IMG/VR virus record: IMGVR_UViG_3300028840_008185
Location: 186,001-250,000 of that record
Strand: one strand, 5' to 3'
DNA: 64,000 nucleotides
Part shown: one piece after another, positions 1-30,108 of the stretch
How the letters are laid out: each line of letters opens with the position of its first letter
Numbering within the stretch: the first letter of the stretch is position 1
Program-made: the position numbers and the translations under genes
The notes under the pieces: model-generated
What the model saw: only the letters and a program-made list of their open reading frames with translations
Databases searched by the model: none
Told to the model about the DNA's origin: nothing

Positions 1-38
1 CCACGCCGTGGCCACCATACTTGTAAACGCCCATCTTT

Positions 39-362
39 TCACCATCCTCTCTCGTGCAGTGCAGTCTCCAGCCGATTCCGCACGCCGTTCCAATAGTCCC
101 AATCCTTCGCCCAGTCTCTGCTCAGTTCCTCGATTGTCGAGTCACCCAGAGGGCTATAGGGATGGTAATTCCAGCGGTTGTCCTCCTCGCCAAAGTCCAC
201 GCCCATACCACCCTCGGTTAGGAGCTTCTGCGCCTCCTCTTTCGAGAGAACGTAGGGGGAGCAGCCGTTGAAGATCATCCAGTCCCAATGGTCAACGTCA
301 ACAGCCCAGACACCACCCGGATGGTTATGGTCACCAGCGAGAAAGATTTTCTTGTCGGACAT
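39..362 (-). CDS. hypothetical protein (107 aa)
   Basis: ORF with GGAGG SD; tightly packed with neighbours. Confidence 0.75.
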   Translation of the reverse strand: MSDKKIFLAGDHNHPGGVWAVDVDHWDWMIFNGCSPYVLSKEEAQKLLTEGGMGVDFGEEDNRWNYHPYSPLGDSTIEELSRDWAKDWDYWNGVRNRLETALHERGW

Positions 363-364
363 GC

Positions 365-703
365 TTATACCTCCTCGACGAAGAACTCGTTGTATATCGC
401 ATCATCATCCCAACGCCCTTGGGCATCAAGACAGGTTCGGCTGTAGAGCACAACCTCATGCTGGGGGAAGCGAGCCTTCCACTTGCGAGCCTGAGCCCTC
501 ATCTCCTCCAACGTCCCCGCGCAAGGTTGGTGCATGTCGCAAGCCCAGTCGAAGTCCTCGTCATTATCGGTCAACGACGGCAGGTGGCAAGGGGAAATAC
601 CATCAGCCTCAAAGGTGTAACGCTGACCGTAGAGCGCGTTATGAGCATGAGCCCACTTCGCCGTGCCCCAGGAATTCATGAGGTCTTCTTGTGTATACTT
701 CAT
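365..703 (-). CDS. hypothetical protein (112 aa)
   Basis: ORF, ATGA overlap with upstream gene, GGAGAG SD. Confidence 0.75.
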   Translation of the reverse strand: MKYTQEDLMNSWGTAKWAHAHNALYGQRYTFEADGISPCHLPSLTDNDEDFDWACDMHQPCAGTLEEMRAQARKWKARFPQHEVVLYSRTCLDAQGRWDDDAIYNEFFVEEV

Positions 704-957
704 TGTCTCTCCTCCCAGAGCTTTACGTGAGCGTCGTAGTAGTCCTCGCGGCGGTGGTGAGAAGTGAATTCCTTCCAGCCGTCCTGGTAGTCACGAGTCA
801 GAGCCTCTCGCCAGGTAATCTCTGGGGGCAGCACTGACCAGTCCACCTTGCCCATAGCGAAAGCACAGTCAGCAAGGCGCACAGCACCAAGTCCATGCCG
901 CGAGTAGCAGATCCCTGCGTGCTTCCATCCCAGCTTGTAGAGGTCAGAACGCATCAT
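700..957 (-). CDS. hypothetical protein (MMRSDLYKLGW...)
   Basis: Start reassigned to ATG 957 (AAGGAG SD, ATGA overlap with upstream stop). Confidence 0.7.
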   Translation of the reverse strand: MMRSDLYKLGWKHAGICYSRHGLGAVRLADCAFAMGKVDWSVLPPEITWREALTRDYQDGWKEFTSHHRREDYYDAHVKLWEERQ

Positions 958-1199
958 TTCTCCTTGATGTCGAACTTGTCGAGAAGGTCGCTGATCAGAC
1001 CATTGCAACCGTGCTCGCCCAAGTCATAGTCCACGAGAATGTCGTAGAGCTTGTTCCGTACTTCGTTGTCCTTGTCACACAAGCAGGACGCTCGCTTGCA
1101 GTCGAGGCAGATGTGCTTCGCTCCACACCAGCACTGTAGACGGGGAGCACTGCAATAGAGGCAGTTTCCCTGCTCGTCGCAAGTCGGGAACCTCATCAC
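954..1199 (-). CDS. small Cys-rich, probable zinc-binding protein
   Basis: CLYC, CWCG, CLDC, CLC motifs; stop/start overlaps. Confidence 0.65.
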   Translation of the reverse strand: MMRFPTCDEQGNCLYCSAPRLQCWCGAKHICLDCKRASCLCDKDNEVRNKLYDILVDYDLGEHGCNGLISDLLDKFDIKEK

Positions 1200-1351
1200 T
1201 CATCCCCGTCCTTCGCGACCTTGTGGTGGTCGCAGATGCACTTGTCACCCACCTTCTTCACCTTCCCCTTGGGGATGGCCTTCCGGCAGATGTAGCAGTA
1301 GGAACCGGACAGCTTGATTCTCAGGCGCTGCTTGTAGGGAACCAGCGGCAT
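1196..1351 (-). CDS. small zinc-finger-like protein (MPLVPYKQ..., 51 aa)
   Basis: GGAGG SD before ATG 1351; CYIC...CICDHH. Confidence 0.65.
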   Translation of the reverse strand: MPLVPYKQRLRIKLSGSYCYICRKAIPKGKVKKVGDKCICDHHKVAKDGDE

Positions 1352-1389
1352 ATCTTTCCTCCGTTGTTTTGGGTTTTGTCCTTCAAACT

Positions 1390-1553
1390 TGGTAGTACGA
1401 GCTGGATTCGAACCTGCATCTCCTAGGATGACTGCCCTCGTCACCACCCCTACCTCCTCCATCAGCTCAGTCCGCAGAACCAATGGGGGTTTCAGAGTAA
1501 TGGCTCAAACAGCCAGCGGACACCTAGGCGTCTTACCATTAGACCATCGCACA
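1390..1553 (-). ncRNA. tRNA-like RNA 1; anticodon loop replaced by a 97-nt insert
   Basis: Acceptor TGTGCGA/TCGTACT plus A-CCA; D arm GTCT-AATGGTA-AGAC; stem CCTAG/CTAGG; T arm GCAGG-TTCGAAT-CCAGC. Confidence 0.85.
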
Positions 1554-1558
1554 TATCT

Positions 1559-1699
1559 TGGCTGCGTGTGTTGGACTCGAACCAACATCTCCCGGAACAG
1601 CCATGCCTACCTCCTCACCTATGCACCCACGACATAGGCAAGGGCTCAGCATGACTGGTGGGTTTCCTCCGGGCGTCTTGCCAATTAGACCACCACGCC
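1559..1699 (-). ncRNA. tRNA-like RNA 2; anticodon loop replaced by a 73-nt insert
   Basis: Acceptor GGCGTGG/ACACGCA plus G-CCA; D arm GTCT-AATTGGCA-AGAC; stem CCCGG/CCGGG; T arm GTTGG-TTCGAGT-CCAAC. Confidence 0.85.
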
Positions 1700-1800
1700 G
1701 TATGTTGCTATACCTCAAAACGAAAACCAAAACACTTCATCGGACTCTCCGTTTCGCTGCCCCCCGACAATGGGCAACGCAGAAAGAGGTTTGAGGTTTG

Positions 1801-1830
1801 GGCTCTCCGAGCCCTGAAGCCCGGAGAGCC
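1801..1830 (-). terminator. GC-rich hairpin downstream of 1840..2070, possible terminator or processing site
   Basis: 9-bp inverted repeat ggctctccg/cggagagcc; no clear U-tract. Confidence 0.35.
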
Positions 1831-1839
1831 ACTGTTCCT

Positions 1840-2070
1840 TTACTCCTTGGCCTCCTTGCTCCCGATGACCGTCAGGTTCAGCCCGAGCTGGAGGGGAACC
1901 ACCACCCCGTCCACCACCACGCTCACCTTGCCGGTGGCGTAGTAGCCCACGGAACCGCTGCTGAACGAGCGGGGGCTGAGGTCGAAGGTCTGACCGGCGA
2001 CCTCCACCGTCATGGACTGCGCACCGCTGAGGAAATCCTTCTTCTTGATGGGACATGCTTTCTTGGCCAT
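1840..2070 (-). CDS. small conserved-looking beta-rich protein (MAKKACPIK...FSSGSVGYYATGK...LNLTVIGSK)
   Basis: AAGGAG SD before ATG 2070; strong coding bias. Confidence 0.8.
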   Translation of the reverse strand: MAKKACPIKKKDFLSGAQSMTVEVAGQTFDLSPRSFSSGSVGYYATGKVSVVVDGVVVPLQLGLNLTVIGSKEAKE

Positions 2071-2098
2071 TTTGCTTCTCCTTTGCTGTTGGTTGATA

Positions 2099-2524
2099 CT
2101 ACAGGTTGATGTCATCACAGCTTCTTACAGCCGTGAACGGAAAACCGTTATAGTCTCTTGGACCGAGTTGCGTATTATATTTGCTGATGCTATAGTTGCC
2201 CCCACGAACCACGACCCACATCACCTTGGACCGAACATACTCAAGTCCAGGGTTCTTCTCGGTGGGGTCAGTCTCGCAGAACTCACCAGTGAGGCCAGGG
2301 TTGGACTCCACGAAGTTCCAGAAGGAATCGCTCTCGGAGAGAACGTAGAACACATCGCCCTCTGGAATCTCCATGCTGATGCGCTGAAGGTCACCACGGC
2401 TCAAGTCACCCCAGCCGATCTTCTCACCCTTGGCGTTATACCAACCGCCGTTGTGGATGAAGTCATCAGCCCGCATCTGACCATCACCACGAAGTCCATA
2501 CTTCTCAAGGTCGCTTGTGTTCAT
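2099..2524 (-). CDS. hypothetical protein (141 aa)
   Basis: ORF packing, SD. Confidence 0.75.
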   Translation of the reverse strand: MNTSDLEKYGLRGDGQMRADDFIHNGGWYNAKGEKIGWGDLSRGDLQRISMEIPEGDVFYVLSESDSFWNFVESNPGLTGEFCETDPTEKNPGLEYVRSKVMWVVVRGGNYSISKYNTQLGPRDYNGFPFTAVRSCDDINL

Positions 2525-2525
2525 C

Positions 2526-2984
2526 TTATGGCTCCATCCTTGAGAGACAATCTGCCATCATCTCTCGGTGTTCGATCCAGTCTTGACTCCACACATGGTC
2601 GGTGAGAGGGCGACATCGATCCGCCAGAGCTTTCAGCCTCTTGGCGTGACCAAAGTTGCGGCTTCGTAGCTCCCACTTGGCCTCGCTGGCAATCTCATCC
2701 ACGCACCACTGGAAGTCTTTTCTCGCTTCCATCGCCTTGATGTGGTTGTCAACCTGACCATGACGCTGCATGATGCGGACCCTCTCCTGGTTGAGAGTGT
2801 CGAGCTTGTCGGAGACGCACATCAGGTTGCTCCAGCCATCACGATCCCTACTGGAGTTGCGCCCAGCGAGATACCACTCGCCGTCGTTACCAACCAGCAA
2901 GTCGCTGTGATCCTTCCAGTCGTAGACGACATGAGCACGAACCTCATCGATAGTCATGCAACTATCGGGATACAGATTGACCAT
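2526..2984 (-). CDS. hypothetical protein with coiled-coil segment
   Basis: GAGGAGGAGG SD before ATG 2984. Confidence 0.75.
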   Translation of the reverse strand: MVNLYPDSCMTIDEVRAHVVYDWKDHSDLLVGNDGEWYLAGRNSSRDRDGWSNLMCVSDKLDTLNQERVRIMQRHGQVDNHIKAMEARKDFQWCVDEIASEAKWELRSRNFGHAKRLKALADRCRPLTDHVWSQDWIEHREMMADCLSRMEP

Positions 2985-2998
2985 GGCTCCTCCTCCTC

Positions 2999-3301
2999 TT
3001 AGTAGTGACCTACGTAAGGCCACCGAGTCTCATTGATGATGTGGATGCTAGTCTCCCAGGTCGGTTGATCAAGCTCGTAGTCCCACTCGGAACCCTCACC
3101 AGTGCTCCGCTTCACCAACCTACCATCGGGCAGAATCCCAATCGCAAACTGGTGAGAAGCATTGTGGCCAACCCGGTGAAACTCCACTTCAACCGCCACG
3201 CCATCTACCACCATAACATCGGTGAGAATGTGGTAGTTGTGGTAGCGCTCCTTGGCGTCTTCAACGAGATGGTCAAATATTTCCTGGGAGGTTTCGCTCA
3301 T
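2999..3301 (-). CDS. hypothetical protein (100 aa)
   Basis: GAGGAG SD. Confidence 0.75.
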   Translation of the reverse strand: MSETSQEIFDHLVEDAKERYHNYHILTDVMVVDGVAVEVEFHRVGHNASHQFAIGILPDGRLVKRSTGEGSEWDYELDQPTWETSIHIINETRWPYVGHY

Positions 3302-3304
3302 TTG

Positions 3305-3463
3305 CTATCTCCTCTTGTCCGTTAGTTTCGGGGGCCACTGGCCAGCCACTCTGTCGTATCCCTGGAAAGGCCACACATCAGCTTCAAGAATGTCCAGAGC
3401 CTCACCCTCCAAGTCCACATCTTTCTCGGGGATAGGGACCAGCTTGTGTTTGGCCTTCTTCAT
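3305..3463 (-). CDS. hypothetical protein (MKKAKHKLVP..., 52 aa; not in ORF track)
   Basis: Hand translation fills the gap between neighbours exactly. Confidence 0.6.
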   Translation of the reverse strand: MKKAKHKLVPIPEKDVDLEGEALDILEADVWPFQGYDRVAGQWPPKLTDKRR

Positions 3464-3466
3464 CTC

Positions 3467-3856
3467 TCAGTCACCGCATTTCGGGCAGGCAGGAGTTATG
3501 TCCGTGAAACCATTGGGCAGTGGGTTATTGGCTCTGGCGACCCAATCACTCACATTCCCATACTTCTCCAACACCTCGGCTGGGGTCATGCACCACTTCG
3601 GGTACCTACAGTCGGAGCAGAGGTAACCGAGCGGTCTGCCGTAGCCAGCAACGATGTCACCGAGAGTGGTGCCGTCTATGAAGGGAAGGATGGCGTCTGG
3701 AAGGCACAAGAACTCTGGGCCATTCTTCACGTAGAGGGAGAGCCCAACCACAACATCCTGAGCCAGATCCTCTTGGTCGTGACCTCTGGTGCCGTACCTA
3801 TCATCGGACAGGATTTGCTGAATCATATCCCTAACGCCGCTTCTTGTGATGAGCAT
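3467..3856 (-). CDS. hypothetical protein with CxxC pairs (CSDC, CPKC)
   Basis: ORF packing; start may be MIQQ at 3826. Confidence 0.7.
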   Translation of the reverse strand: MLITRSGVRDMIQQILSDDRYGTRGHDQEDLAQDVVVGLSLYVKNGPEFLCLPDAILPFIDGTTLGDIVAGYGRPLGYLCSDCRYPKWCMTPAEVLEKYGNVSDWVARANNPLPNGFTDITPACPKCGD

Positions 3857-3859
3857 CTT

Positions 3860-4102
3860 CTACTCCTTGATGTGCATGACGTTGAACATCTGGAACTGCG
3901 GCGGACCCTCACCAACCCAGACGCCATCGAACGGTCGGAGCCAATCCTTCACAGCATCCTCCGTTCCTTCCACCGCGATGTGCTGCCCCGTGATGCGTCG
4001 GTTGCTGTCAGTCACAATGGTCACCTCTTCCCAATCGGCAAGCACCGTAATGTTATCCGGAACGGGAAGCATTTCTGGCATAGCAAGCAAGTGTATTTGC
4101 AT
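3860..4102 (-). CDS. hypothetical protein (MQIHLLAM...)
   Basis: AGGAG SD before ATG 4102. Confidence 0.7.
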   Translation of the reverse strand: MQIHLLAMPEMLPVPDNITVLADWEEVTIVTDSNRRITGQHIAVEGTEDAVKDWLRPFDGVWVGEGPPQFQMFNVMHIKE

Positions 4103-4106
4103 CGTC

Positions 4107-4307
4107 TTAGCTCCTATACCACCACGAGGCATCCACCGTGATTACTCCGTTCTCATCGGGGCCGTTCATCGGGCAGTGCTCAAAGCCACCGTGGAGATCC
4201 ACCAGGGCGTAAGCACGAGTCTTTGCGCCGCCCTTGGTGTCATGTCCATACTCCACTGTCTTCTTTGGTCCCCTGATGAAGACCACCCTGAACGGCTTGT
4301 TGCTCAT
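4107..4307 (-). CDS. hypothetical protein (MSNKPFRVV...)
   Basis: GGAGG SD before ATG 4307. Confidence 0.7.
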   Translation of the reverse strand: MSNKPFRVVFIRGPKKTVEYGHDTKGGAKTRAYALVDLHGGFEHCPMNGPDENGVITVDASWWYRS

Positions 4308-4352
4308 CGTCTTGTCTCCTCCGAAAGCTTCCAGTAGCGACATTTCAATCCC

Positions 4353-4772
4353 CTACTTGTTGTACCAGACTACGTGAGTGAACCGCTCATCCCAGAGCCC
4401 ACCACGGACATCACTTGGATGCACCTTGATGTCGGAGACTTGGAGATCCGTGGCATACTCCCCAAAGCCGTCGTCATCGATGAACATTCCATCGACACAG
4501 TGGCGGGTAAACTCCTCACGGGTCATGTGGTCGCCGTAGTCGGGAATGGACTCCCACTTGATGGGGTCGGGACCAACCTCCACCTTCAAGTTGGTCGCCT
4601 TGAGGAAGAACACAATCTCCTCATCCAGCCGCTTCCACAACTCCAGGGCTGAGGGCACACCACACTCCACCAAGTCCATCACAGACTCGCGCCGCTTCTC
4701 CAGCCACTCCACGGGGTTGATCTCCCCCTCTTTCCAGGTGTCCAGCAGATTCTCACGCAGTCTGTCTTTCAT
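4353..4772 (-). CDS. hypothetical protein (139 aa)
   Basis: ORF, ATGA overlap. Confidence 0.75.
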   Translation of the reverse strand: MKDRLRENLLDTWKEGEINPVEWLEKRRESVMDLVECGVPSALELWKRLDEEIVFFLKATNLKVEVGPDPIKWESIPDYGDHMTREEFTRHCVDGMFIDDDGFGEYATDLQVSDIKVHPSDVRGGLWDERFTHVVWYNK

Positions 4773-4882
4773 TGATCCTCAACCTTTCCCCGACAGGCTT
4801 TCTTGTCGGCTTCTTTCTTTTGGTCCGTATGTCTACCACTTCCGCCGTGCTGAAATGCTGCCACGGCGATATGGTTTCTCAC
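4769..4882 (-). CDS. small basic protein (MRNHIAVAAFQH..., 37 aa; not in ORF track)
   Basis: GTG start, open frame ends in an ATGA overlap with 4353..4772. Confidence 0.5.
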   Translation of the reverse strand: MRNHIAVAAFQHGGSGRHTDQKKEADKKACRGKVEDQ

Positions 4883-4883
4883 G

Positions 4884-5141
4884 TTAGGCTTTCTCTTTCT
4901 CCCACGGCGCTTTCGGCGGCGGTTCCTCTTCTTGGACATCTACCCATCGCTCCTCGTAGTGCTCAATGTCAAACCGCATGTCCCACATTTCAGCGCAACG
5001 CTGACACATCGTCTTGTCGTCACGGATGTAGGCATCGCAGAAAGTCTCAACTCCACAAACCATGCAGGGCTGAAGAGGCTTACGCTGCTTAGCTCGAATC
5101 TGCTCCCGACGCTTCTTGCGGTTGTGCTTGTCCCAAGGCAT
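4884..5141 (-). CDS. basic protein with CxxC zinc ribbon (CMVC...CQRC)
   Basis: Start at MPWD just after upstream stop. Confidence 0.7.
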   Translation of the reverse strand: MPWDKHNRKKRREQIRAKQRKPLQPCMVCGVETFCDAYIRDDKTMCQRCAEMWDMRFDIEHYEERWVDVQEEEPPPKAPWEKEKA

Positions 5142-5142
5142 A

Positions 5143-5304
5143 TTAGCGCAGCTTCTCGCCGTTGAGAGCACGGGCAGCCAGCCTCGCCCTGTCCATCACC
5201 ACGTCAGCCGTATACTCCACGTCGTGGTGATACTGGTCATACGCCGTGTAAGCACCGAACGTTGCCAGAGCCAATACAGTAACCACCAAAAACGTCTTGA
5301 ACAT
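5143..5304 (-). CDS. small membrane-anchored or secreted protein (MFKTFLVVTVLALA...)
   Basis: GAGGAG SD; N-terminal hydrophobic helix. Confidence 0.7.
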   Translation of the reverse strand: MFKTFLVVTVLALATFGAYTAYDQYHHDVEYTADVVMDRARLAARALNGEKLR

Positions 5305-5407
5305 GAGTCTCTCCTCTTGTTGTCTTGGCGCATTGCTCAAGCGCCTTTGGCGCAACCAGCTTGGTCCCAAGACCACCATGCTAGCTGGTTGCTGTGGTGC
5401 GGTGTTG

Positions 5408-5794
5408 CTAGAAACAACTTCGTAGTGCTCCAGTCCCGAAGCACATTGTCCCGTTCGTGTTTGTGTAGACGGTGGAGTTGCTGTCATAGGTCCAGTGGTT
5501 GTAGTCTTTGTCGGTGCCGTATGAAGTGCCATCGTCGTTGTAGGTGCCACTCCACATGCTTCCAGTGTTGAAGTTGTGACCCCTGACTTCGGTCCTGTCG
5601 CTGTACGTGTCCACGTCGTAGAAGTTGCCAGAGTTGTAGTCATACGACGTGCTGTAGAGCGGGGTCGTAGTGGTCGGCACGATGCTGTCACAGCCGATGC
5701 AGGTGGTGCTGAAGCCGTCAAGCCAGTCTGCCTGCACGTTGCCAGCACAGAACACCATTGCCACGAATGCCAGAATTGCCACGATTGCCTTCAT
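5408..5794 (-). CDS. secreted Ser/Thr/Tyr-rich protein
   Basis: Signal peptide MKAIVAILAFVAMVFCAGNVQA; AAGGAG SD. Confidence 0.8.
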   Translation of the reverse strand: MKAIVAILAFVAMVFCAGNVQADWLDGFSTTCIGCDSIVPTTTTPLYSTSYDYNSGNFYDVDTYSDRTEVRGHNFNTGSMWSGTYNDDGTSYGTDKDYNHWTYDSNSTVYTNTNGTMCFGTGALRSCF

Positions 5795-5830
5795 TTGTCT
5801 CTCTCCTTGTTGGTTGTTGACTCCGATATG

Positions 5831-6154
5831 TTACAGCCCCAAACAGGCTGCCGGTAGAATTCCGTTAACTATGTTGCTGCAACTATTATTACGAAGTGCG
5901 TCCAGACATGCATCCCACTCTTCCACTGTAGGCTGGTTTGTCACCATCTGCCCACACTTCCCAGCGTCCATGCAGCAACCACCCATGAACACATTTACGC
6001 ACTCGTCGAAGTTGACAGATGAGTTACACTCCATCACCCGCTGACAAGTTGCCATGCCACTCTCGTAACAGACATCTTGGGCTGTCTCCGGTAGCTCACC
6101 GCCACCACACGCCGAGACTGCGAACACCAGAAGAATTGCTACGATTGCCTTCAT
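5831..6154 (-). CDS. Cys-rich lipoprotein
   Basis: MKAIVAILLVFAVSA-C lipobox; multiple further Cys. Confidence 0.8.
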   Translation of the reverse strand: MKAIVAILLVFAVSACGGGELPETAQDVCYESGMATCQRVMECNSSVNFDECVNVFMGGCCMDAGKCGQMVTNQPTVEEWDACLDALRNNSCSNIVNGILPAACLGL

Positions 6155-6178
6155 CTATCTTCTCCCTGTTTGGGTTGT

Positions 6179-6502
6179 TTAGAACATCCTGATTTCACGG
6201 TTGCCAGACTCATCCACCTCATACACCTTCCAGAAGCCACTTGGGAACACCTCGTAAATTGCGTCGAGAATCTGCTCCCTTGAAGCGTCTACATCCACCT
6301 CAGCCACCTTGTCATCGGGACCGCACATCACTGGACCCAAGTAGACGTTGAAGAACCGCTTGCCAGTCTTAGCCCGAGATGCCGCCATCACATCGTCAGC
6401 CACCACACAACCCTTGGAGTAGGTCACACAACCGGGCTTCACCCAATGACCGTCACCATCCTGCGTGTAACCCTTGGCAATCAACTGGCTTCTCAACGTC
6501 AT
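6179..6502 (-). CDS. hypothetical protein (107 aa)
   Basis: GGAGG SD. Confidence 0.75.
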   Translation of the reverse strand: MTLRSQLIAKGYTQDGDGHWVKPGCVTYSKGCVVADDVMAASRAKTGKRFFNVYLGPVMCGPDDKVAEVDVDASREQILDAIYEVFPSGFWKVYEVDESGNREIRMF

Positions 6503-6505
6503 GGC

Positions 6506-6859
6506 TTACCTCCTCCAATCGGGGTTGATCTCATCACGCAGAGCGTGCCAGTCACCATCCAGCTCCACCAACCGCTCGCACTGTTCTTCCGTGAGCCAGT
6601 TGATGCTGCACTCCCAGGTCACGTCTCCACCCTTGTGGTAGGTGGTGCGAGTCACGAACCGACCGTCGAAGCCCCAGCACACCGTGGTCCGGTTGCCCCA
6701 CACATGGATACGCACCGACTTGTCCATTTCACCAGTGATCCTGCGAACGTCGTTGTTCCAGTAATACTCGACAACCTGGAAGCCCTGCTCTGGTGTGGGC
6801 ATACTGTCGAGAGCCGACTTGAGCGCGTCGATGACTGTGTTGATGGCGTCGTTATCCAT
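6506..6859 (-). CDS. hypothetical protein (117 aa)
   Basis: ORF with SD. Confidence 0.75.
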   Translation of the reverse strand: MDNDAINTVIDALKSALDSMPTPEQGFQVVEYYWNNDVRRITGEMDKSVRIHVWGNRTTVCWGFDGRFVTRTTYHKGGDVTWECSINWLTEEQCERLVELDGDWHALRDEINPDWRR

Positions 6860-6934
6860 GGCACGTAGCTCCGTTTTTGATACGGTGTTTGGTGGAATTT
6901 TTGCTGGTACTTAAGTCAGGATTTGGGTTTCTGG

Positions 6935-7135
6935 CTAGACCTTCTGAAGTCTAGTTCGCCGCAACTTCTTGGGTCGCTTGAACGTCACAATGTAGCAATC
7001 CTCATCGCGGTCCATCTCCACCACTTCCCACCCCTTTGAGCCATAACCATTGAGCCAGTTACGTAGCTTGTGGGTGTCGAGAATGATACGAGACTTGAAC
7101 ATGAACCGCTCTACAGTGTATTCCCACTTGGTCAT
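6935..7135 (-). CDS. DUF4177-like small protein
   Basis: KWEY...LNGYGSKGWEVV...FKR pattern typical of DUF4177. Confidence 0.7.
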   Translation of the reverse strand: MTKWEYTVERFMFKSRIILDTHKLRNWLNGYGSKGWEVVEMDRDEDCYIVTFKRPKKLRRTRLQKV

Positions 7136-7170
7136 TTAGCTCTCCGGTGACACGGTGTTTTGGCAAAAAC

Positions 7171-7316
7171 TGGTCTGGGGTCTGAGCACCCCTGGTCGGC
7201 GCTATTTCCCCAATGATTCCCCAGGTTTCCAGCGCCCCTCCTCGGTTGGGAAACCATAACTACTTGAAACAACAGACCATTCAGGTGGCGCCCAAGTCCA
7301 GGGGACACGGCGCCCA
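7171..7316 (-). ncRNA. candidate structured RNA with H-type pseudoknot
   Basis: Outer stem TGGTCTG/CAGACCA; crossing stems GGTTTCC/GGAAACC and GGCGCT/AGCGCC; extra hairpins; followed by GTTTTT. Confidence 0.5.
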
Positions 7317-7320
7317 TCCC

Positions 7321-7515
7321 TCAGTCCCAAGAGTTGTAGTAAGCGTTGTCCTCACCGTCAGACTCACGCTCCACAACGGGCGGGGAGGAGTGAGTGTTGT
7401 AGAAGTAGTAGTAGCAGAAGTAGTTGTGACACTCCCACATACCACCGATGCTGCACTCCATCCAGACCAGCGGAGTGTCGCACTCACCACAGACCTTGAC
7501 CATCTTCTTGCTCAT
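7321..7515 (-). CDS. small zinc-ribbon protein (MSKKMVKVCGEC...), Tyr-rich C-terminal half
   Basis: AAGGAGGAG SD directly after the mini-tRNA CCA; CGEC, CSIG, CHNYFC. Confidence 0.7.
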   Translation of the reverse strand: MSKKMVKVCGECDTPLVWMECSIGGMWECHNYFCYYYFYNTHSSPPVVERESDGEDNAYYNSWD

Positions 7516-7525
7516 CACTCCTCCT

Positions 7526-7577
7526 TGGTGAACCTTTGTGGACTCGAACCACATACTTCCAAATACAAGTAAGGTTC
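7526..7577 (-). ncRNA. 52-nt minimal tRNA-like RNA lacking an anticodon arm
   Basis: Perfect 7-bp acceptor GAACCTT/AAGGTTC plus A-CCA; hairpin ACTT-GTATTTGG-AAGT; canonical T arm TGTGG-TTCGAGT-CCACA. Confidence 0.8.
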
Positions 7578-7789
7578 ATTACTTAGCCGCCGCTGACTCA
7601 ACCGAAACACGAGGGGTAGATGCCGTTCATGTTGTCTCTCTTGGTGAGGTGGTGGTTGTCAGTCGCGGACCTTTAGGGTGCATTTCAAAGCCCCACTGAC
7701 TCTCCGGGCACCCATCTCCCAGAGCATCTTCTTCTCTCTCCGGTTGCTCCATGTTTACTTCATCTGCTTTTTCCTCCAGTACTGACTCA

Positions 7790-7809
7790 AGGGGCCCCTA
7801 GGGGCCCCT
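7790..7809. repeat. 20-bp perfect palindrome, (AGGGGCCCCT)x2
   Basis: Read directly; lies just past the stop of 7818..8027. Confidence 0.9.
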
Positions 7810-7817
7810 CTTGCTAC

Positions 7818-8027
7818 TTACTTCATCTTCTCCTTGACTTGAGCCAACATCGAGTCCATGGCCAGCGTGTAGACGGCTAACTTCTCGCACATCGCATCCA
7901 CTTCGCTCTTTTGCTCCGATTGCTCTTGCTCTTGGTGCATCAGCCTCCACAACCGCCGCTCACTTGCGTCTCGAACATGATGGTAGCGTGGGGCTGACCT
8001 TCCGCCTCGTGGTCTACACATGGCCAT
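7818..8027 (-). CDS. hypothetical coiled-coil protein (MAMCRPRGG...)
   Basis: GGAGGT SD; start overlaps upstream stop. Confidence 0.65.
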   Translation of the reverse strand: MAMCRPRGGRSAPRYHHVRDASERRLWRLMHQEQEQSEQKSEVDAMCEKLAVYTLAMDSMLAQVKEKMK

Positions 8028-8197
8028 CAGCCCACCTCCAACTTCTTGCCGCGCTCCTTGGCGACATGCAGCGCACCGCGCTGGTCGGTGCCGCGCACCT
8101 TCATCTTCTGCACTGACCCACGACGGCGGGAAGGGGCAAACACCTTGACCTCCACCCACTCACCGTGGACCAGCTTCTTCTCGATACGATAGCTCAT
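8027..8197 (-). CDS. small basic protein (MSYRIEKK...)
   Basis: AGGAGG SD before ATG 8197. Confidence 0.7.
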   Translation of the reverse strand: MSYRIEKKLVHGEWVEVKVFAPSRRRGSVQKMKVRGTDQRGALHVAKERGKKLEVG

Positions 8198-8210
8198 TGT
8201 TCCTCCTGTT

Positions 8211-8429
8211 TTAGAGGTGGCTGAAACCAACGCCGCCGGGACAAATGGTCCGACCGCGCTGCCCAGAAGTAACCCTCTCGATGAGGGCGTTGTAGGTTGA
8301 CTCGGGACAACGAACCTTCCCGTCGTGGTCAACGGGGAGGTAGATGAAGACAGTGTGGTTGACACCACGGCACCAGATGGTAACTGCCGTGAGCCTGTAA
8401 GACAGACGACCCTTCCAAGTCTTACGCAT
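8211..8429 (-). CDS. hypothetical protein (MRKTWKGR...)
   Basis: AAGGAG SD; packing. Confidence 0.65.
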   Translation of the reverse strand: MRKTWKGRLSYRLTAVTIWCRGVNHTVFIYLPVDHDGKVRCPESTYNALIERVTSGQRGRTICPGGVGFSHL

Positions 8430-8430
8430 G

Positions 8431-8703
8431 CTACTCACTCTCCTTCCCCACCCTCAACCAACCCAGCTCATAAGCTCTCTTGGTGAGGTGGACTAGAAGC
8501 CTGGTGTCTCCCTTGGTCGATGCCATGAACTGAGCACGGAGCAAGAGGTGGTAGAAGAACACCAAGTCTTGTGGATACTTACCAGACCTGGTGACCCTTC
8601 TTCTCTGAAGTCCACGCCTCCTACGCCACACTGCATTGCTCAGTGCGTCTCCTACTTCCCACATGAAGGTGGGGTCTTGCACAGACACAGAGAAGGGATA
8701 CAT
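8431..8703 (-). CDS. basic hypothetical protein (MYPFSVSVQ...)
   Basis: AAGGAG SD before ATG 8703; upstream extension in the track is non-coding-like. Confidence 0.7.
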   Translation of the reverse strand: MYPFSVSVQDPTFMWEVGDALSNAVWRRRRGLQRRRVTRSGKYPQDLVFFYHLLLRAQFMASTKGDTRLLVHLTKRAYELGWLRVGKESE

Positions 8704-8724
8704 GACGTTGCTCCTTTGTTGGCC

Positions 8725-8763
8725 TCTCATATACACACGTAGTATATACGTGTGCATATGAGA
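8725..8763 (-). repeat. 17-bp hairpin (one G-U pair on the minus strand), 5-nt loop
   Basis: tctcatat-a-cacacgta / tacgtgtg-c-atatgaga. Confidence 0.8.
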
Positions 8764-8800
8764 AGGGGCTCTGTAGGAGCCCTTGTGAGGAGGGGAGTGT

Positions 8801-9007
8801 TTAGCTGTTGTTGAGGATGGTGAGGGCGAAGTCCCTGGCCTGACCCAGCTCCTTGGCCTTGGGGTCGTTGGGGTCGATGATGCCGGTGGCGTTGGTGAGT
8901 GCAGCGTCGAGGCGCTGCAAGGCCACCTTGGCGAGGGGGGTGTTGAGGTTGTTGAGGCGGGGGTAGAGGGCCTGCACTGCCTTGCGGATGTTGTGCAACA
9001 TTGACAT
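8801..9007 (-). CDS. small helical protein (MSMLHNIRK..., 68 aa), first gene of the high-GC block
   Basis: CAGGAG SD before ATG 9007; strong codon bias. Confidence 0.8.
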   Translation of the reverse strand: MSMLHNIRKAVQALYPRLNNLNTPLAKVALQRLDAALTNATGIIDPNDPKAKELGQARDFALTILNNS

Positions 9008-9086
9008 ATCTCCTGTGAAGGGGTTGAAGAAACAGTGAGAGGATCGTAAGACCACAACCCCATTACTCAAGGATCGTGATCTTCCG

Positions 9087-9116
9087 ACTCTAACTTTCAA
9101 AACTTTCGCCTTTCAA
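9087..9116 (-). promoter_or_regulatory. candidate host sigma70-type promoter TTGAAA-N18-TAGAGT
   Basis: Read on the minus strand upstream of 8801..9007; T-rich upstream element; TTTTGAAAG occurs twice. Confidence 0.4.
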
Positions 9117-9748
9117 AACCACAGAGCGAAAAAAATAAAGTTTCCCAAGTCCACAAAATTATTCAGTTTTTTGTGTTGCAAAAAATATACAGGGTGTATA
9201 CATTCTGCCACGGTACCAGGCGGCGCGGACCCCCGGCGCACGAGGCGACCACCGATTCGGAGAGATTATGTCTATCATATAGTAGAATATAGAGTAATAT
9301 GGAGCTACAGGAAGAGTAATAGTGGATATATGGGGTAGTTTGCTACGTAGAGTGTATCATTAGATTATAGATACATGTATCTATGGGATAGGTAGATGGG
9401 GCTACGCGACATTTTGTCATAGGTCATTTGCTTATTGTGATAGGATTTAGGTGGGTTATGGATCTGGTCTAAGATCCAAGGGAGGGAAGGATTAGAAGAG
9501 CTATGTCTTTCCTATATCGCGCCATTGTATTATGGGATTGGTGGCGTGATGTGGCTTGATTTGACCTACTATAGTATGTCTTATGTATGTTGTGGGTTAT
9601 ACGTGGGGAATGGTGGTAAGAAGTGGGGAGAATATACAGCAATTTGTATCATTTGCTTTACGGTATTTCTTTAATGATATTGGTGTGTTATAGTATGGGA
9701 GAAAGGCAAATAAATTCAGCTATTTCCTTATACTCTTTAGCCCGGAAA
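9101..9748. other. about 650-bp non-coding junction with G>>C skew on the plus strand and an 18-bp palindrome (9367-9384)
   Basis: No ORF of 60 aa or more; spot counts about 20 G to 5 C per 60 nt; atagatacatgtatctat. Confidence 0.75.
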
Positions 9749-12442
9749 TTATAGATTATCCTCGTAGTAATGTAGCTCTCCTATCTCCTCTTCCGTATGA
9801 GGCTCTTTGGTTATATTCTCGTTGATTGTTTCGATTAAGATTCTTATAGCCGGGGCTAGGGATTTCAGTTCATTTAGGTCATATGTCTCAATATCTATCT
9901 GAGTCTGCGGGAAGCCCGCATATATGTCTTGCTTGGCGTATCGCTTTAGAGGTGCTGGGGTTTCTATAGGCTTTTGACAAATAATAAATACCTCCTTCTC
10001 GCGCCCTCTTGATTGGGCTCCGAAGGTCGCCTTGATTCCGATGTTCGCACTTACATCGGAATTCCTGTAGTTTGTGATGTCCCAGCCTTGGAACATCTCT
10101 TTGGGAAACAGTTCAGTTAAATCTGGATCATAGGGCTTCCCTATTGGGACGACGTTTGATGTATCTCCACCCCTTTGGTCCGTTAAATTCATACTCTCCG
10201 CAAAGCCTCCTATCGTAGTAATAATAGGAGCTATTTTCTCGACATCTTTGGGAAAATCGAAATGAAGCGTATAAGTATTCCTATCTATATCCACCTTGAG
10301 ACCTAGGTTAAAATCTCCTATCTGCGATGGCCATGAAAGATGTCCTGCGGGTAATCGGTCTTTTGTCGCATCTATAGAGAAGTATCCATTATTGAAATTA
10401 TTTTGCTTCGGGAAAGAGACCCAAGCCATGAAGTATGCTCCATATAATTCTCCCTCGCGCCCAGTTTTCTCCTGCTCTCTTCCCTCCATAGAGGTCCAAC
10501 CACCGAAAACTGTTATAGACAGTTCGGGAAAGAACTTTTCCAATATCTCTTTTGGCTGGCCATATAGCTTTGCCCGCTTAGATATAGAGAATGTTTGGCT
10601 TTCAAGCTTAATCGCTTGAGCTTTGGCCCCGATGTTCTTTATGACCTGAATAGGCTCCGTGAAGTTTCCACCCACGGGTATGTTATACTGTGATGTTTCA
10701 TCCTGGTTGAATAACTCAAAGAATATGTTGTATGAGACTGGCTTACCTTCGTGGTGGATGAGCATAATTTTAAGATAAATATTTAGTTTTTTACTTCCCG
10801 CTCGTATAACAGTATCTTCATACTTCAGAGTATCCCAACCCTTAAAGATTTCTGGTGGAAACACCTCTTTCATTTCTGGAGGCGCTGGGTCTTTGTCTCC
10901 CTCTTCCTTCTTTAGAGTGAACTCAGCAATCAAATCATGAATCTGTGGGAGTTGTTCTTCGAATTCACCTTTGCTCAGGTTTTCCACCTCAGCGCCGCGA
11001 TATTCATTTGTAAATCCCCAGCGCACTTCTACACCCTCTTTGCCGCTTGGATGAACTTCTTCTGGCCATCCCATAGCCCAGGAGATTTTATCTTGTTCTT
11101 TATCTACACGCAGAAAAACTTCTCCCTGGTGAAACCTCAGATAGGCTTCTATCTCATTGGGTTCATACTTAGTAACAAACCATTGCGGCTTATCACCTCG
11201 CATGGTGCCAAAAACATGGGCTGGGAAGTATTTTCTTAGGTCTACCTCCTGAGCCCGCTTAGATATAGGTAATGATTGATTTCCTATCAACTCTAGCTCT
11301 TCTTCTGGGTATTGCTGCTTTGCTTCTTCGGCAAGATCATTTCCGCTGTCGATTGCCTGTTTGATAGGCTCAATTAGTTTGTCGAACTCTCCCATAGTTT
11401 TTGCTATAACCATTTCGTTGAACACTGGGTCCATCTTCGGCATGTTTAGTTGGATGTGAACCCCGCCGTATGTTAGGCGAATATCCACTGAGTAGTAAGG
11501 TTCAGTTGGATTAGGCGTGAGCGGTGGTAAGTGAGCCTTTATAATGTCTACGTCATAGTTTTCTATTATGAAATTCTTGAATAAGTTCTTTGGGAATAGC
11601 TCCGTGAAGTTTATGTTTTGGACCGCTCCAGTAGGTCTTGGCTTCTGGTATTCTGTTATGCCCCTTTGCTTTAGACTCTTCAGTGTTTCTGCATCTACTC
11701 CAACACTTTCAATAATTTCAAGAATTTTGGGCAGCTTCTCCTTTATCTCCTCGTTTTCCAGCCATATTTTTAGAGGCTTTCCTATCAAGCCGGTATTGAA
11801 GTCTCCTAGCTCTGGATCCCATTTTAAATCCAGTGTCATTTGTTTTCTTCCGCCTTTAAAATGATGTAGTTCTAATCTTATCCTTGGCTCCCACTTTATT
11901 CCTGGAATATGCACGTAGGCTTCAAAGGCGTCTGTCTCCCACGAAGAGCCTCCGCCATATTTTAAAGCTTGAATGTTCCAACCGCCGAAATATCCTGGCG
12001 GAATGAAAGGGAAGTGTTTTCTTAATACCTCCGCTGCTTCGTGTCTCTCTTCCTCTTTCCAGCTTGATCTCTTGGAAATCCTAGGCGTTATTTCTTTAAT
12101 AGTTTCCTGATCTTTCTCGGGAAGCTTCTTGAAGAGCCTGTCTTTAATCACGAAATCTATGTTCTTTTTCGCATCGACAACTTTACCTTTATAATCATAA
12201 TCTTTCTCTAATTGAGACGCAGTTGGATCAAATATGTTTCCCTTCTTATCCTCCGCCCAGAAGTGTGCGGTGTCTTCCTTGTGCTTGCCTTTGCCTTTGT
12301 GTGGCGGCTTGCCTTTCATAAGTTTAAGTTCAGGGAACAGCAGAGACATGGCGGCAGCATAGAAGAAACAATTCCCATGATGCTTCGCCCTCACATTTTC
12401 CTTCATCCATTTCAGGATAGGCTGCCGCTTAGATAGTTTCAT
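9749..12442 (-). CDS. 897-aa modular (poly)protein: N-terminal Cys-His-Asp (transglutaminase/papain-like) domain plus three repeated two-domain cassettes separated by ISKR[AS]
   Basis: GNCF...HFW...DPTASQ; motifs at aa 3, 122, 393, 620; six FP..F.GW-type repeats. Confidence 0.85.
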   Translation of the reverse strand: MKLSKRQPILKWMKENVRAKHHGNCFFYAAAMSLLFPELKLMKGKPPHKGKGKHKEDTAHFWAEDKKGNIFDPTASQLEKDYDYKGKVVDAKKNIDFVIKDRLFKKLPEKDQETIKEITPRISKRSSWKEEERHEAAEVLRKHFPFIPPGYFGGWNIQALKYGGGSSWETDAFEAYVHIPGIKWEPRIRLELHHFKGGRKQMTLDLKWDPELGDFNTGLIGKPLKIWLENEEIKEKLPKILEIIESVGVDAETLKSLKQRGITEYQKPRPTGAVQNINFTELFPKNLFKNFIIENYDVDIIKAHLPPLTPNPTEPYYSVDIRLTYGGVHIQLNMPKMDPVFNEMVIAKTMGEFDKLIEPIKQAIDSGNDLAEEAKQQYPEEELELIGNQSLPISKRAQEVDLRKYFPAHVFGTMRGDKPQWFVTKYEPNEIEAYLRFHQGEVFLRVDKEQDKISWAMGWPEEVHPSGKEGVEVRWGFTNEYRGAEVENLSKGEFEEQLPQIHDLIAEFTLKKEEGDKDPAPPEMKEVFPPEIFKGWDTLKYEDTVIRAGSKKLNIYLKIMLIHHEGKPVSYNIFFELFNQDETSQYNIPVGGNFTEPIQVIKNIGAKAQAIKLESQTFSISKRAKLYGQPKEILEKFFPELSITVFGGWTSMEGREQEKTGREGELYGAYFMAWVSFPKQNNFNNGYFSIDATKDRLPAGHLSWPSQIGDFNLGLKVDIDRNTYTLHFDFPKDVEKIAPIITTIGGFAESMNLTDQRGGDTSNVVPIGKPYDPDLTELFPKEMFQGWDITNYRNSDVSANIGIKATFGAQSRGREKEVFIICQKPIETPAPLKRYAKQDIYAGFPQTQIDIETYDLNELKSLAPAIRILIETINENITKEPHTEEEIGELHYYEDNL

Positions 12443-14742: not shown

Positions 14743-15180
14743 TCATTCCTCTGAGTAAGCTAGAACATTCACGGGGAGGTTACTAACATATTCCAACCAC
14801 TTATAGATTTTGCTCAGTAGCATTGGAAAATACTTCATACTCATCCTTGGAAGATCTACAACGTAGTATCTGTCTTTCTTGCCAGCAGGTTTGGCCATTT
14901 TTCCAAAATATACATCTCCAAGCTCGCTTGGCCATACCATCTTTAGTCTGAATGATTTCCCATCTCCTTCTAGCTCAAGAGTAGCAGATAGATATTCATC
15001 CTCTTTCGCGCCCGCAACTGGCCAGAAGGTTGTCTCCAGTGTTATGAATTCACGCTCGGCAGGCTTTCCCTCAGTGGGACCAAACCATTTGAATGGGAAG
15101 TTCTTTATCTTATCCGGAGTGAAATATCTGAATATGCTCCCCTTATCAGCCTCTTCGTGCTTCTTCCTGAATTCGCTCAT
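14743..15180 (-). CDS. hypothetical protein with WPSxLGD domain paralogous to polyprotein segments
   Basis: LKMVWPSELGDVYFG. Confidence 0.8.
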   Translation of the reverse strand: MSEFRKKHEEADKGSIFRYFTPDKIKNFPFKWFGPTEGKPAEREFITLETTFWPVAGAKEDEYLSATLELEGDGKSFRLKMVWPSELGDVYFGKMAKPAGKKDRYYVVDLPRMSMKYFPMLLSKIYKWLEYVSNLPVNVLAYSEE

Positions 15181-26290: not shown

Positions 26291-27133
26291 TTAGCCACTT
26301 ATTTTATCAATAAACTCCTTGAGTTCCAAGCCCTCGAACCCCGATTCTTCAGCAGCTTTCTTTAGTCCGCCGACAGAATTTAGAAAGGTTCTAATTACTT
26401 GCATCTCTTTTGTCGTGAAAGTGCAAGAACCCAGCCTGTAATCCTGGAACGCCTCACAAGCCACTGGAACCACAGGCTTAATTAACTCAAAGATGGCCTC
26501 GGCATATTGTCTCATTTCCCACTGCGCATGCGGATGAAGCCTAAGCCCTAGAAAATGAAAGAGATTGTGGAGATCCATTTTCCAATACCACTGAGTATAC
26601 GAAGAAAGCGGAAGATTGATTCGTGCCATCTCTTTAGCTGTCCCCTGCGCCAGCATACTATCGTAGTCGGTGAAGGCCGCGTTCTGGCCAGCTTCAATAA
26701 TGCCGATTACTTCTTCCTCGTTACTAAGTTTGCCTGTGCTTCCCTGCTTGTTGAACTTGTCCTGAACCCTAATGTGATTAGGTAGATAGGCTCCGTTGTT
26801 CAACTTAGAATACCTACCACTCTGCTCGTTGAGACTGGCTGTTCTATGGCGAACCCACTGTCTGGCCACAAAGATCGGCATTTTGCAATGGAACTTGAAC
26901 TCCACCATCTCGAATGGAGATGTATGCCTGTGTCGCATCAAATACCTGAGAAGTTCTCTATCCTTCTCTGCGCCCTTGGATCCCTTATTGAAACTCACGC
27001 GGGCTGCCTGGACGATAGAGGTGTCGTTACCAAAGAAATCTACAAGTCTTACAAAACCTTGATCCAGTACCTCGATACTCCTACCGCAGTACTCCCGCTT
27101 CATCTTAGCTTCTTCCATATAAATATCTTCCAT
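26291..27133 (-). CDS. thyX: flavin-dependent thymidylate synthase
   Basis: HTSPFEM...FVARQWVRHRTASLNEQSGRY ThyX signature. Confidence 0.97.
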   Translation of the reverse strand: MEDIYMEEAKMKREYCGRSIEVLDQGFVRLVDFFGNDTSIVQAARVSFNKGSKGAEKDRELLRYLMRHRHTSPFEMVEFKFHCKMPIFVARQWVRHRTASLNEQSGRYSKLNNGAYLPNHIRVQDKFNKQGSTGKLSNEEEVIGIIEAGQNAAFTDYDSMLAQGTAKEMARINLPLSSYTQWYWKMDLHNLFHFLGLRLHPHAQWEMRQYAEAIFELIKPVVPVACEAFQDYRLGSCTFTTKEMQVIRTFLNSVGGLKKAAEESGFEGLELKEFIDKISG

Positions 27134-29835: not shown

Positions 29836-30108
29836 TTACTGTTCTCCTTCATCAAATTTCCCAGCACTTAAGTCTTCCAATGTTTTGTCAAATTCTTCAT
29901 CCTCAAAAGATAAACTCCTTGGTTTTACTTTCCCCCAGGGAGTTTCGTTTGAGATTAATCTCGACCAGACTTCTTTATCCACCGCCGCGAGCGTGGCATG
30001 TGCGCCTCTAACATGAACACTATCAATGTTGGTCACATTAGAATAAAACACCAAATACTGTCTCGCGAGCAATAGTTCTGTAAGCGTAAGTTTTCCTAAA
30101 TCTTTCAT
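29836..30108 (-). CDS. hypothetical protein (90 aa)
   Basis: TAATG overlap. Confidence 0.75.
   Translation of the reverse strand: MKDLGKLTLTELLLARQYLVFYSNVTNIDSVHVRGAHATLAAVDKEVWSRLISNETPWGKVKPRSLSFEDEEFDKTLEDLSAGKFDEGEQ

Follow-up and report, generated by a model that had tools for sequence, protein, structure and literature searches.

The locus and the mini element

The stretch of DNA analysed here (the window, 64,000 nt) comprises bases 186001–250000 of a 318-kb IMG/VR virus record, which IMG/VR labels 'provirus'. A JGI contig of 452,599 nt belongs to the same phage, giving a genome size of about 450 kb, and the minus strand carries almost all genes of this phage. On that strand, a 52-nt tRNA-shaped sequence without an anticodon arm, hereafter referred to as the mini element, lies between a spacer and a small gene. 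The features of the locus, in window coordinates, are as follows:

7579–7817, minus: upstream spacer of ~240 nt with no convincing ORF
7790–7809: GC-rich palindromic hairpin opening this spacer, past the stop codon that ends the upstream 69-aa ORF
7577 to 7526, minus: mini element, 52 nt, anticodon arm absent
7578, minus: base −1 (T/U), before the predicted RNase P cut, with possible pairing to A73
7577–7571, minus: acceptor 5′ strand GAACCTT (tRNA positions 1–7), 7/7 Watson–Crick pairs with 7536–7530
7570–7555, minus: D-like hairpin ACTT-GTATTTGG-AAGT, without an 8/9 linker and with GG at the end of the loop
7554, minus: one-nt linker, A, in the place of the anticodon arm and variable region
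7553–7537, minus: T arm TGTGG-TTCGAGT-CCACA, with a 5-bp stem and an exact match to GGTTCRANTCC
7536–7530, minus: acceptor 3′ strand AAGGTTC, abutting the T stem to give a 12-bp coaxial stack
7529, minus: discriminator A73
7528–7526, minus: genome-encoded CCA
7525–7518, minus: Shine–Dalgarno (SD) sequence AGGAGGAG, beginning one base past the CCA
7515–7513, minus: ATG start codon of the 64-aa ORF, preceded by TG
7321–7515, minus: downstream gene, encoding a 64-aa Cys-rich ORFan protein (CxxC...C...C-H...C) with homologs P0002 (65%) and P0003 (52%)

The first-pass annotation of this DNA had described a 52-nt mini-tRNA with acceptor, D-like and T arms and CCA but no anticodon arm, and this description holds base by base on the minus strand. 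The acceptor stem is a perfect 7-bp helix, and the T found at 7578 makes the proposed eighth pair, between the −1 base and A73, possible. The hairpin with a loop ending in GG, previously given as 4–5 bp, has 4 bp; an optional fifth pair would form at the expense of acceptor pair 7:66. None of the 16 pairs in the three stems is broken. Taken alone, the RNA is predicted to form a three-way junction (MFE −14.6 kcal/mol, z = −2.1), with pair probabilities of 0.9–0.99 for nearly all pairs and of 0.92–0.97 for the D-like hairpin. In context, the predicted fold is unstable: the acceptor pairs have probabilities anywhere between 0.06 and 0.97 according to the length of flank included, and in some of these folds the 3′ acceptor strand pairs with codons 9–12, enclosing the SD and the AUG.

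The 64-aa Cys-rich protein had no match in Pfam or PHROG. A scan of window 6800–9900 for sigma-70 promoters and intrinsic terminators yielded nothing beyond shuffled expectation, and the sequence GAGTCAG, present upstream of the mini element and in the related contig L006, was dropped as a promoter motif, as it is not recurrent in the genome. The DNA of the mini element was identical in contigs from three independent metagenome runs (sediment and seawater) and in two JGI contigs, so the mini element is not an assembly artefact. Matches in the JGI metagenomes corresponded only to the same phage (99.7–99.9% identity), no polymorphism was seen among the contigs aligned to the region, and megablast of this region against GenBank phages gave no match.

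The GC content rises steadily from 0.46 to 0.55 over about 55 kb (genome 140–195 kb) and falls sharply to 0.43 at window ~9100–9300, where a 650-nt AT-rich intergenic region (window 9100–9748) adjoins the drop; small ORFan genes fill the GC-rich part (window 1–9300 side). A perfect 19-bp inverted repeat with a 5-nt loop (window 8723–8765) is found between two small minus-strand ORFs and surfaced only as a spurious match to a miRNA model.

Chance control and comparison with known RNA classes

The mini element is a real, non-random tRNA-derived structure. Both strands of the genome were scanned for acceptor closures of 7/7 bp within 70 nt of a T arm of 5/5 bp (G53, TTCRANN, C61), and 100 first-order Markov genomes subjected to the same closure scan served as the control. 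The simulations yielded 0.02 closures per strand, and none with CCA (0/100). The real plus strand contained no such closure, and the real minus strand contained the real tRNAs and exactly two short stand-alone closures, the mini element and the following sequence:

Genome 130198–130259 (L010:2699–2760), minus: 62-nt tRNA without an anticodon arm, RF00005 score of 37.8 bits

This 62-nt element has a canonical acceptor stem, U8/A9, a D arm and a T arm and lacks CCA. A terminator-like hairpin lies before it, and an SD and an ATG come after it, ahead of a radical-SAM gene. Its appearance is that of a tRNA-Arg(TCT)-like gene from which a microhomology deletion has removed the anticodon arm; thus, anticodon-arm deletions do occur in this phage genome.

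The mini element has the 7-bp acceptor stem, 5-bp T stem and T-psi-C loop (TTCGAGT) of a canonical tRNA, but a single nucleotide is found where the anticodon arm (5-bp stem, 7-nt loop) and the variable region should lie. ARAGORN made no call in the default and intron modes, and with a lowered score threshold it returned only an uninterpretable 89-nt 'tRNA-???' with a 4-base anticodon. The Rfam tRNA model RF00005 (gathering threshold of 29 bits) gave no match at E ≤ 10 in 541 nt, at E ≤ 5 in 9.8 kb or at E ≤ 1 genome-wide, the last search recovering 41 other sites, including the 62-nt element. Searches with the Rfam families, at gathering thresholds and at lax E-values, yielded only an antisense match to the Plastid-ycf2 model, which itself resembles the reverse strand of a tRNA.

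Other RNA classes were also considered. YrlA-type Y RNAs are non-decoding and have a D arm, a T arm and an acceptor stem, like the mini element, and they occur in genomes encoding Ro60, including those of phages (Chen et al. 2014, PMC4201824); this phage encodes Ro60 and RtcB. YrlA from M. smegmatis is cut by RNase P and receives CCA (PMC4201824). However, YrlA ends at the Ro-binding stem whereas the mini element ends at the acceptor stem, has neither the GNCGAAN0-1G motif nor the Ro60-binding helix, does not match the model (RF02553) and lies far from Ro60, the gene for which (genome ~29.8–30.6 kb) is about 163 kb away from the mini element (193.5 kb). RF02553 gave only sub-threshold matches in the genome, at tandem tRNA-Lys genes. 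The tRNA-like domain of tmRNA shares with the mini element the acceptor stem, a reduced D-loop analogue, the T arm, the 3′ ACCA and the lack of an anticodon arm, but the mini element has A3-U70 rather than G3.U70, no pseudoknots and no tag reading frame, and ARAGORN called no tmRNA. An armless tRNA of mitochondrial type would keep its anticodon arm and have a loop in place of the D or T arm; this class is disfavoured, as the weak call made by ARAGORN in -mt mode re-reads the T arm as an anticodon arm and the -mtx mode made no call. A copy of the 3′ end of a host tRNA at an att site is also disfavoured: a 22-mer from the 3′ half of the mini element had no match in cellular genomes (185,579 species representatives), so no tRNA gene in these genomes carries this half, which argues against copying from a host tRNA.

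The mini element resembles a t-element as defined in PMC1920247, in that it has a non-decoding tRNA-like fold with the T-arm motif and lies beside an mRNA; in a processing signal of this type, the ends would also coincide with transcript termini generated by RNase P/Z.

The tRNA slots of the phage genome

The 40 tRNAs that ARAGORN identified in the phage all belong to the minus strand. An SD-like motif and a start codon are found ≤12 nt past the 3′ end in 26 of these 40 canonical tRNAs, corresponding to 26 of the 34 that are not followed by another tRNA, and a stop codon directly precedes most of them. The succession ORF, tRNA, SD, ORF is a general layout of this genome, and the mini element occupies such a slot. 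The abutment to the SD reported in the first-pass annotation is therefore correct, AGGAGGAG being found directly after the CCA, but it is not peculiar to the mini element, since the same layout occurs in 26/40 canonical tRNAs. An IMG/VR scan for the pattern T loop-N11-CCA-AGGAGG showed that ordinary tRNAs in many other phages share this layout. CCA is encoded by only about five tRNA-type genes of the phage and by very few of the canonical tRNAs. The CCA-encoding genes that are tRNA-shaped and non-decoding are the mini element, two sequences at window 1390–1553 and 1559–1699, and the counterpart of the mini element in the related contig L007.

A motif, CAAGGTC(C/A)AG...(G)GATACTTC, replaces the SD after tRNA-Phe 38031, tRNA-Trp 41678, tRNA-Tyr 49064 and tRNA-Met 49406 (genome coordinates) and leads into short atypical tRNA-like sequences with weak or partial RF00005 matches. 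The sequences listed with this motif are:

Genome 34639–34700
Genome 47944–48008
Genome 49330–49387

Default ARAGORN also missed non-canonical tRNA-like genes on the minus strand (genome 11988–12075, 13443–13524, 42101–42184 and 42189–42272), among which there are two Ser-like genes (anticodons GCT and GGA) with odd D arms and a tandem pair with a long variable arm and an apparently absent D arm.

Other tRNA-shaped elements

The following sequences, in the same part of the window, are the other members of the trio of anticodon-less tRNA mimics within 6.2 kb that had been noticed at first reading, and this count stands:

Window 1390–1553 and 1559–1699, minus: two tandem paralogous tRNA-shaped genes with canonical D and T arms and encoded CCA

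Their inserts at the anticodon position measure 90 and 64 nt, respectively, as drawn by ARAGORN, with about 95 and 70 nt between the strands of the anticodon stem. Positions 1:72 and 7:66 are mismatched in both genes, and GGAGGAGGTAGG precedes an ATG or GTG in each insert. The genes are called by ARAGORN only if arbitrary 'introns' are allowed, and the Rfam tRNA model did not detect them. The mini element, its L007 counterpart and these two genes resemble a set of non-decoding scaffolds that encode CCA and vary in their middle part, the shared descent of all four being putative.

About 1.3 kb outside the start of the window, an acceptor stem and a T arm close a 135-nt element (genome 184621–184755, minus strand) that contains GCCGAACGGUGGUGAGUUA; this sequence fits the GNCGAAN0-1G motif of Y RNAs and is similar to the strand of metazoan Y RNAs that binds Ro60. 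The Rfam YrlA model did not match this element. In other viral contigs, non-decoding elements running into AGGAGG-ATG were observed at L029:241–303 (plus strand; 63 nt, with an acceptor stem, one hairpin and a T arm), in L030 (minus strand, ending at 1512; 74 nt, with G3.U70 and ACCA) and in L011 (minus strand, ending at 1972; 131 nt, with a tmRNA-like acceptor, GGGGCUG...CAGCUCCACCA).

Conservation in related contigs

The search for homologs of the 64-aa protein identified only two among 5.8 billion proteins. In L007, the downstream homolog (65% aa identity) is syntenic, and 36/36 nt are identical to the locus described here, from two bases before the T stem through the T arm, the 3′ acceptor strand, ACCA and AGGAGGA. 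For the adjacent CDS, nucleotide identity with L007 is 73%, and no identical run exceeds 21 nt. An identity of 36 nt would be expected by chance with a probability of 0.73^36 (~1e-5), or of ~0.007 at the 87% identity of the next CDS, with the qualification that the SD, constrained anyway for translation, makes up part of the 36 nt. The enzyme-facing (3′) half of the mini element thus appears, from one informative relative, to be under purifying selection.

The 5′ half differs in L007, where GGACCU closes a 6-bp acceptor stem with a compatible change (A2-U71 to G2.U71). A hairpin, GUC-GUUGG-GAC, directly follows this acceptor strand, in the same place as the D-like hairpin, and a 45-nt arm is found where the mini element has a single A (one 45-nt gap in the MAFFT alignment). 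The two sequences therefore differ essentially by one 45-nt gap and a 5-nt indel, and in both of them the acceptor stem closes, the T arm is kept and a small hairpin ends in UUGG. A central arm, 45 nt long in L007 and 0 nt in the mini element, is dispensable. We do not claim covariation for the D-like hairpin, because the MAFFT alignment contains two sequences, in which the hairpin loops were aligned by sequence and the stems are in different registers. The L007 contig starts exactly at the putative G1, so that the 5′ end and the −1 base fall outside it.

No tRNA-like element was found upstream of the homolog of the 64-aa protein in L006 (52% identity), and the downstream gene therefore does not require the mini element. 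In a third relative, G001 (PrkA identity of 72%), a canonical tRNA-Arg(TCT) is located downstream of the homolog of the fusion enzyme described below; this relative is uninformative on the mini element, since the small-ORF region is missing. Peptide-pattern searches of IMG/VR with the 897-aa and 64-aa neighbours yielded no relatives, and exact and degenerate DNA patterns of the mini element had no match in viral contigs.

Another non-coding block, of about 155 nt (window ~7141–7293, minus strand), lies between the Cys-rich ORF and a DUF4177-like ORF. It is ~96% identical to L007, exceeding both flanking CDSs, and contains a hairpin (GGGGU-GCUCAG-ACCCC) with a T-run about 55 nt upstream of the ATG of the next gene, making it a candidate structured leader or small RNA. 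It had no Rfam match, its use as a search anchor in viral and cellular collections gave no matches, and no further homolog of the DUF4177-like neighbour was found.

RNA-processing machinery of the phage

Genes with a potential role in RNA processing were identified as follows:

Genome 7476–7745 (L039:1501–1770), minus: bacterial type-A RNase P RNA of ~270 nt (RF00010, 145.8 bits, against a 100-bit gathering threshold)
Genome 26298–27512, minus: RtcB (222 bits)
Genome ~29843–30601, minus: Ro60/TROVE, in a 590-aa frame
Window 15177–19691, minus: 1504-aa fusion protein with SET, eukaryotic-type topoisomerase IB, CCA-adding/poly(A) polymerase head and HD domains

The RNase P RNA abuts tRNA-Thr(TGT). 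The blocks of its catalytic core could be aligned at high posterior probability, insertions of the P13/P14 type are reduced, and the GGGUAGG/L15 region is kept; in the M1 RNA of E. coli, the GGGUAGG stretch contains the nucleotides pairing with the 3′ RCCA of the substrate. No prior report of a phage-encoded RNase P RNA was found in the literature searched, and no similar gene was found in GenBank phage records. The 318 kb of the phage record yielded no homolog of RnpA or RNase Z, and the other viral records with non-decoding tRNA-like elements contained no RNase P RNA. The RtcB and Ro60 genes are located among three tRNA-Lys genes, an arrangement resembling the rsr-rtcB RNA-repair module. The first-pass annotation had considered the mini element as a substrate of the phage CCA enzyme; such a role is not needed, as the CCA is genome-encoded, and CCA repair by this enzyme is a possibility.

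Interpretation of the mini element

The minimal unit recognised by enzymes is a 12-bp coaxial acceptor/T stack with the T loop and a 3′ RCCA; minimal-substrate constructs are laboratory-made, whereas the mini element is a natural gene with an extra D-like hairpin. Plant mitochondrial t-elements were reportedly described by Hanic-Joyce in 1990. Like the mini element, they are non-decoding, have the GGTTCRANYCC T-arm motif and an acceptor stem, and lie beside protein-coding genes, where RNase P/Z, by acting on them, sets the ends of mRNAs (Forner et al. 2007, PMC1920247). The cuts generating mRNA 5′ or 3′ ends at t-elements have been proposed and partly shown, whereas cleavage of the mini element is predicted from its sequence. 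The t-elements are CCA-tailed and not aminoacylated (bioRxiv 10.1101/2024.09.09.612099), have a roughly full cloverleaf and no genome-encoded CCA (10.1101/2024.09.09.612099), and belong to organelle genomes with a protein-only RNase P; in contrast, the mini element is 52 nt long, lacks the anticodon arm, has an encoded ACCA, touches the SD and resides in a phage with its own RNase P ribozyme. The small products of the mascRNA/MALAT1 and MEN-beta elements are not aminoacylated, as summarised in 10.1101/2024.09.09.612099, and, unlike the mini element, these are 3′-end signals of eukaryotic nuclear lncRNAs, with an anticodon-like arm and CCA added post-transcriptionally.

Bacterial RNase P recognises the acceptor/T stack, the T loop, U−1, G1:C72 and RCCA, and the sequence of the mini element has them all (12-bp acceptor/T stack, T loop, U(−1), G1:C72, 3′ RCCA). 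A 7-bp acceptor stem is a major RNase P determinant (PMC4201824), and minimal substrates depend on RCCA (PMC12710915). We suggest that the mini element may be a tRNA-derived 'top-half' processing signal cut by RNase P, in the manner of t-elements or mascRNA. This is the best-supported reading, given the RNase P determinants, the genome of tRNA slots, the conserved 3′ half and the phage ribozyme, and we hold it tentatively, with confidence somewhat short of even. The punctuation mark for RNase P/Z proposed at first reading is favoured to this extent by context (slot, determinants, the 3′ half invariant in L007 and the phage RNase P RNA), the cleavage itself being a prediction. The decoy, T-box and RelA ideas advanced at the same time found no support.

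That the mini element is transcribed, folds in vivo and is cut by RNase P is inferred, as is any processing on its 3′ side. The mini element would be co-transcribed with its neighbours and then fold, the acceptor and T arms stacking over 12 bp and the D-like hairpin presenting GG to the T loop. Having lost, or never had, a decoding arm, it would sit in a tRNA slot punctuating long one-strand transcription units. RNase P, either the host holoenzyme or the phage P RNA with host protein, would recognise it like a pre-tRNA and cut between U−1 (7578) and G+1 (7577), a U−1:A73 pair possibly shifting or weakening this cleavage. The cut would detach the 240-nt spacer and everything upstream of it from the downstream message. 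On the 3′ side, CCA is an anti-determinant for many RNase Z enzymes, and the encoded CCA touching the SD leaves no space for trailer cleavage of the usual kind. A second cut, at ACCA or beyond it, could produce a 52-nt stable RNA and an mRNA starting at the SD; alternatively, the mRNA encoding the 64-aa protein would keep the mimic as a base-paired cap at its 5′ end.

The mini element could instead be a stand-alone small RNA, its 52-nt product (generated by RNase P and a 3′ nuclease) acting in trans as an acceptor or elbow mimic, whether as a partner or substrate of Ro60, RtcB or the CCA-adding/HD fusion or as a decoy. The encoded ACCA, the perfect stems and the hairpin presenting GG point to a stable product of tRNA-like type; the non-decoding tRNA-shaped genes encode CCA, which very few canonical tRNAs do; and the phage encodes Ro60/TROVE, RtcB and a CCA enzyme. 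Furthermore, bacterial Y RNAs are tRNA mimics without a decoding arm (PMC4201824), and short non-decoding elements are also present in unrelated viral contigs (L029 and L030). However, the mini element has neither the Ro60-binding helix nor the GNCGAAN0-1G motif and is not matched by the YrlA model, the Ro60 gene is ~163 kb distant, the data name no target or partner, and the lack of the element in L006 indicates that it is dispensable in that lineage. We consider a trans-acting RNA of this type unlikely.

The possibility that the mini element is a non-functional remnant, the central arm of which was lost by a single recent deletion and which is now drifting, has a similarly small chance of being correct. 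A difference from L007 amounting essentially to a 45-nt gap and a 5-nt indel is consistent with such an event, the 62-nt element at 130198–130259 shows that anticodon-arm deletions of this kind occur in the genome, and L006 lacks the element. Nevertheless, no change has occurred in 36 nt while the adjacent CDS gained 27% nucleotide differences, 16/16 stem pairs are intact, the mini element is identical across all sampled populations, and the 5′ half, although different from that of L007, still closes the acceptor stem and forms a hairpin with the same loop end. Decay, which had been foreseen at first reading, is thus argued against by the conservation of the 3′ half in L007, the sole informative relative.

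A structure acting in cis in the 5′-UTR on the translation or stability of the 64-aa ORF without RNase P, as a protective 5′ stem or an SD-occluding switch, is in our opinion improbable. The mini element touches the SD, the ACCA-AGGAGGA junction is conserved, and some in-context folds enclose the SD and the AUG, but the SD-occluding pairing is not kept in L007 (TGGTGAG to TGGCAGT), a consensus T loop, a 7+5-bp stack and CCA would be unneeded in a generic hairpin, and canonical tRNAs hold the same position before dozens of other genes. An att-site or recombination scar (a tRNA 3′ part duplicated by an integrase) or a decoding armless tRNA is hardly credible: the conserved part is the 3′ half, as in tRNA-targeting att cores, the record carries the 'provirus' label and ARAGORN made a weak mitochondrial-mode call, but both acceptor strands are present and perfectly paired, the 22-mer of the 3′ half occurs in 0 of 185,579 cellular species representatives, the armless call counts the T arm as an anticodon arm, is without linkers and was rejected by the stricter mode, and a 12-bp stack is too short to span the distance from anticodon to CCA.

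Beyond the processing signal itself, a broader and more speculative scenario can be envisaged, which we regard as rather improbable: a phage combining mitochondrion-like tRNA punctuation with its own RNase P ribozyme would have a family of CCA-ending, non-decoding top-halves (middle arms of 0, 45, ~70 and ~95 nt), with the mini element as the minimal member, and the released RNAs, rather than being mere cleavage marks, would engage the phage CCA/HD enzyme, Ro60/RtcB, or host acceptor-end readers or defences.

For annotation, these results indicate that tRNA finders and Rfam miss tRNA-derived elements recurring before phage genes, of which L029 and L030 provide further examples. If the RNase P processing model is true, the mini element would be a natural minimal RNase P substrate, of 52 nt, with no anticodon arm and with a genome-encoded RCCA, and the principle of tRNA punctuation and t-elements would reach bacteriophage, beyond organelles and eukaryotic lncRNAs. 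Together with the phage RNase P RNA, this would suggest that huge phages may segment their polycistronic transcripts independently of host promoters and terminators.
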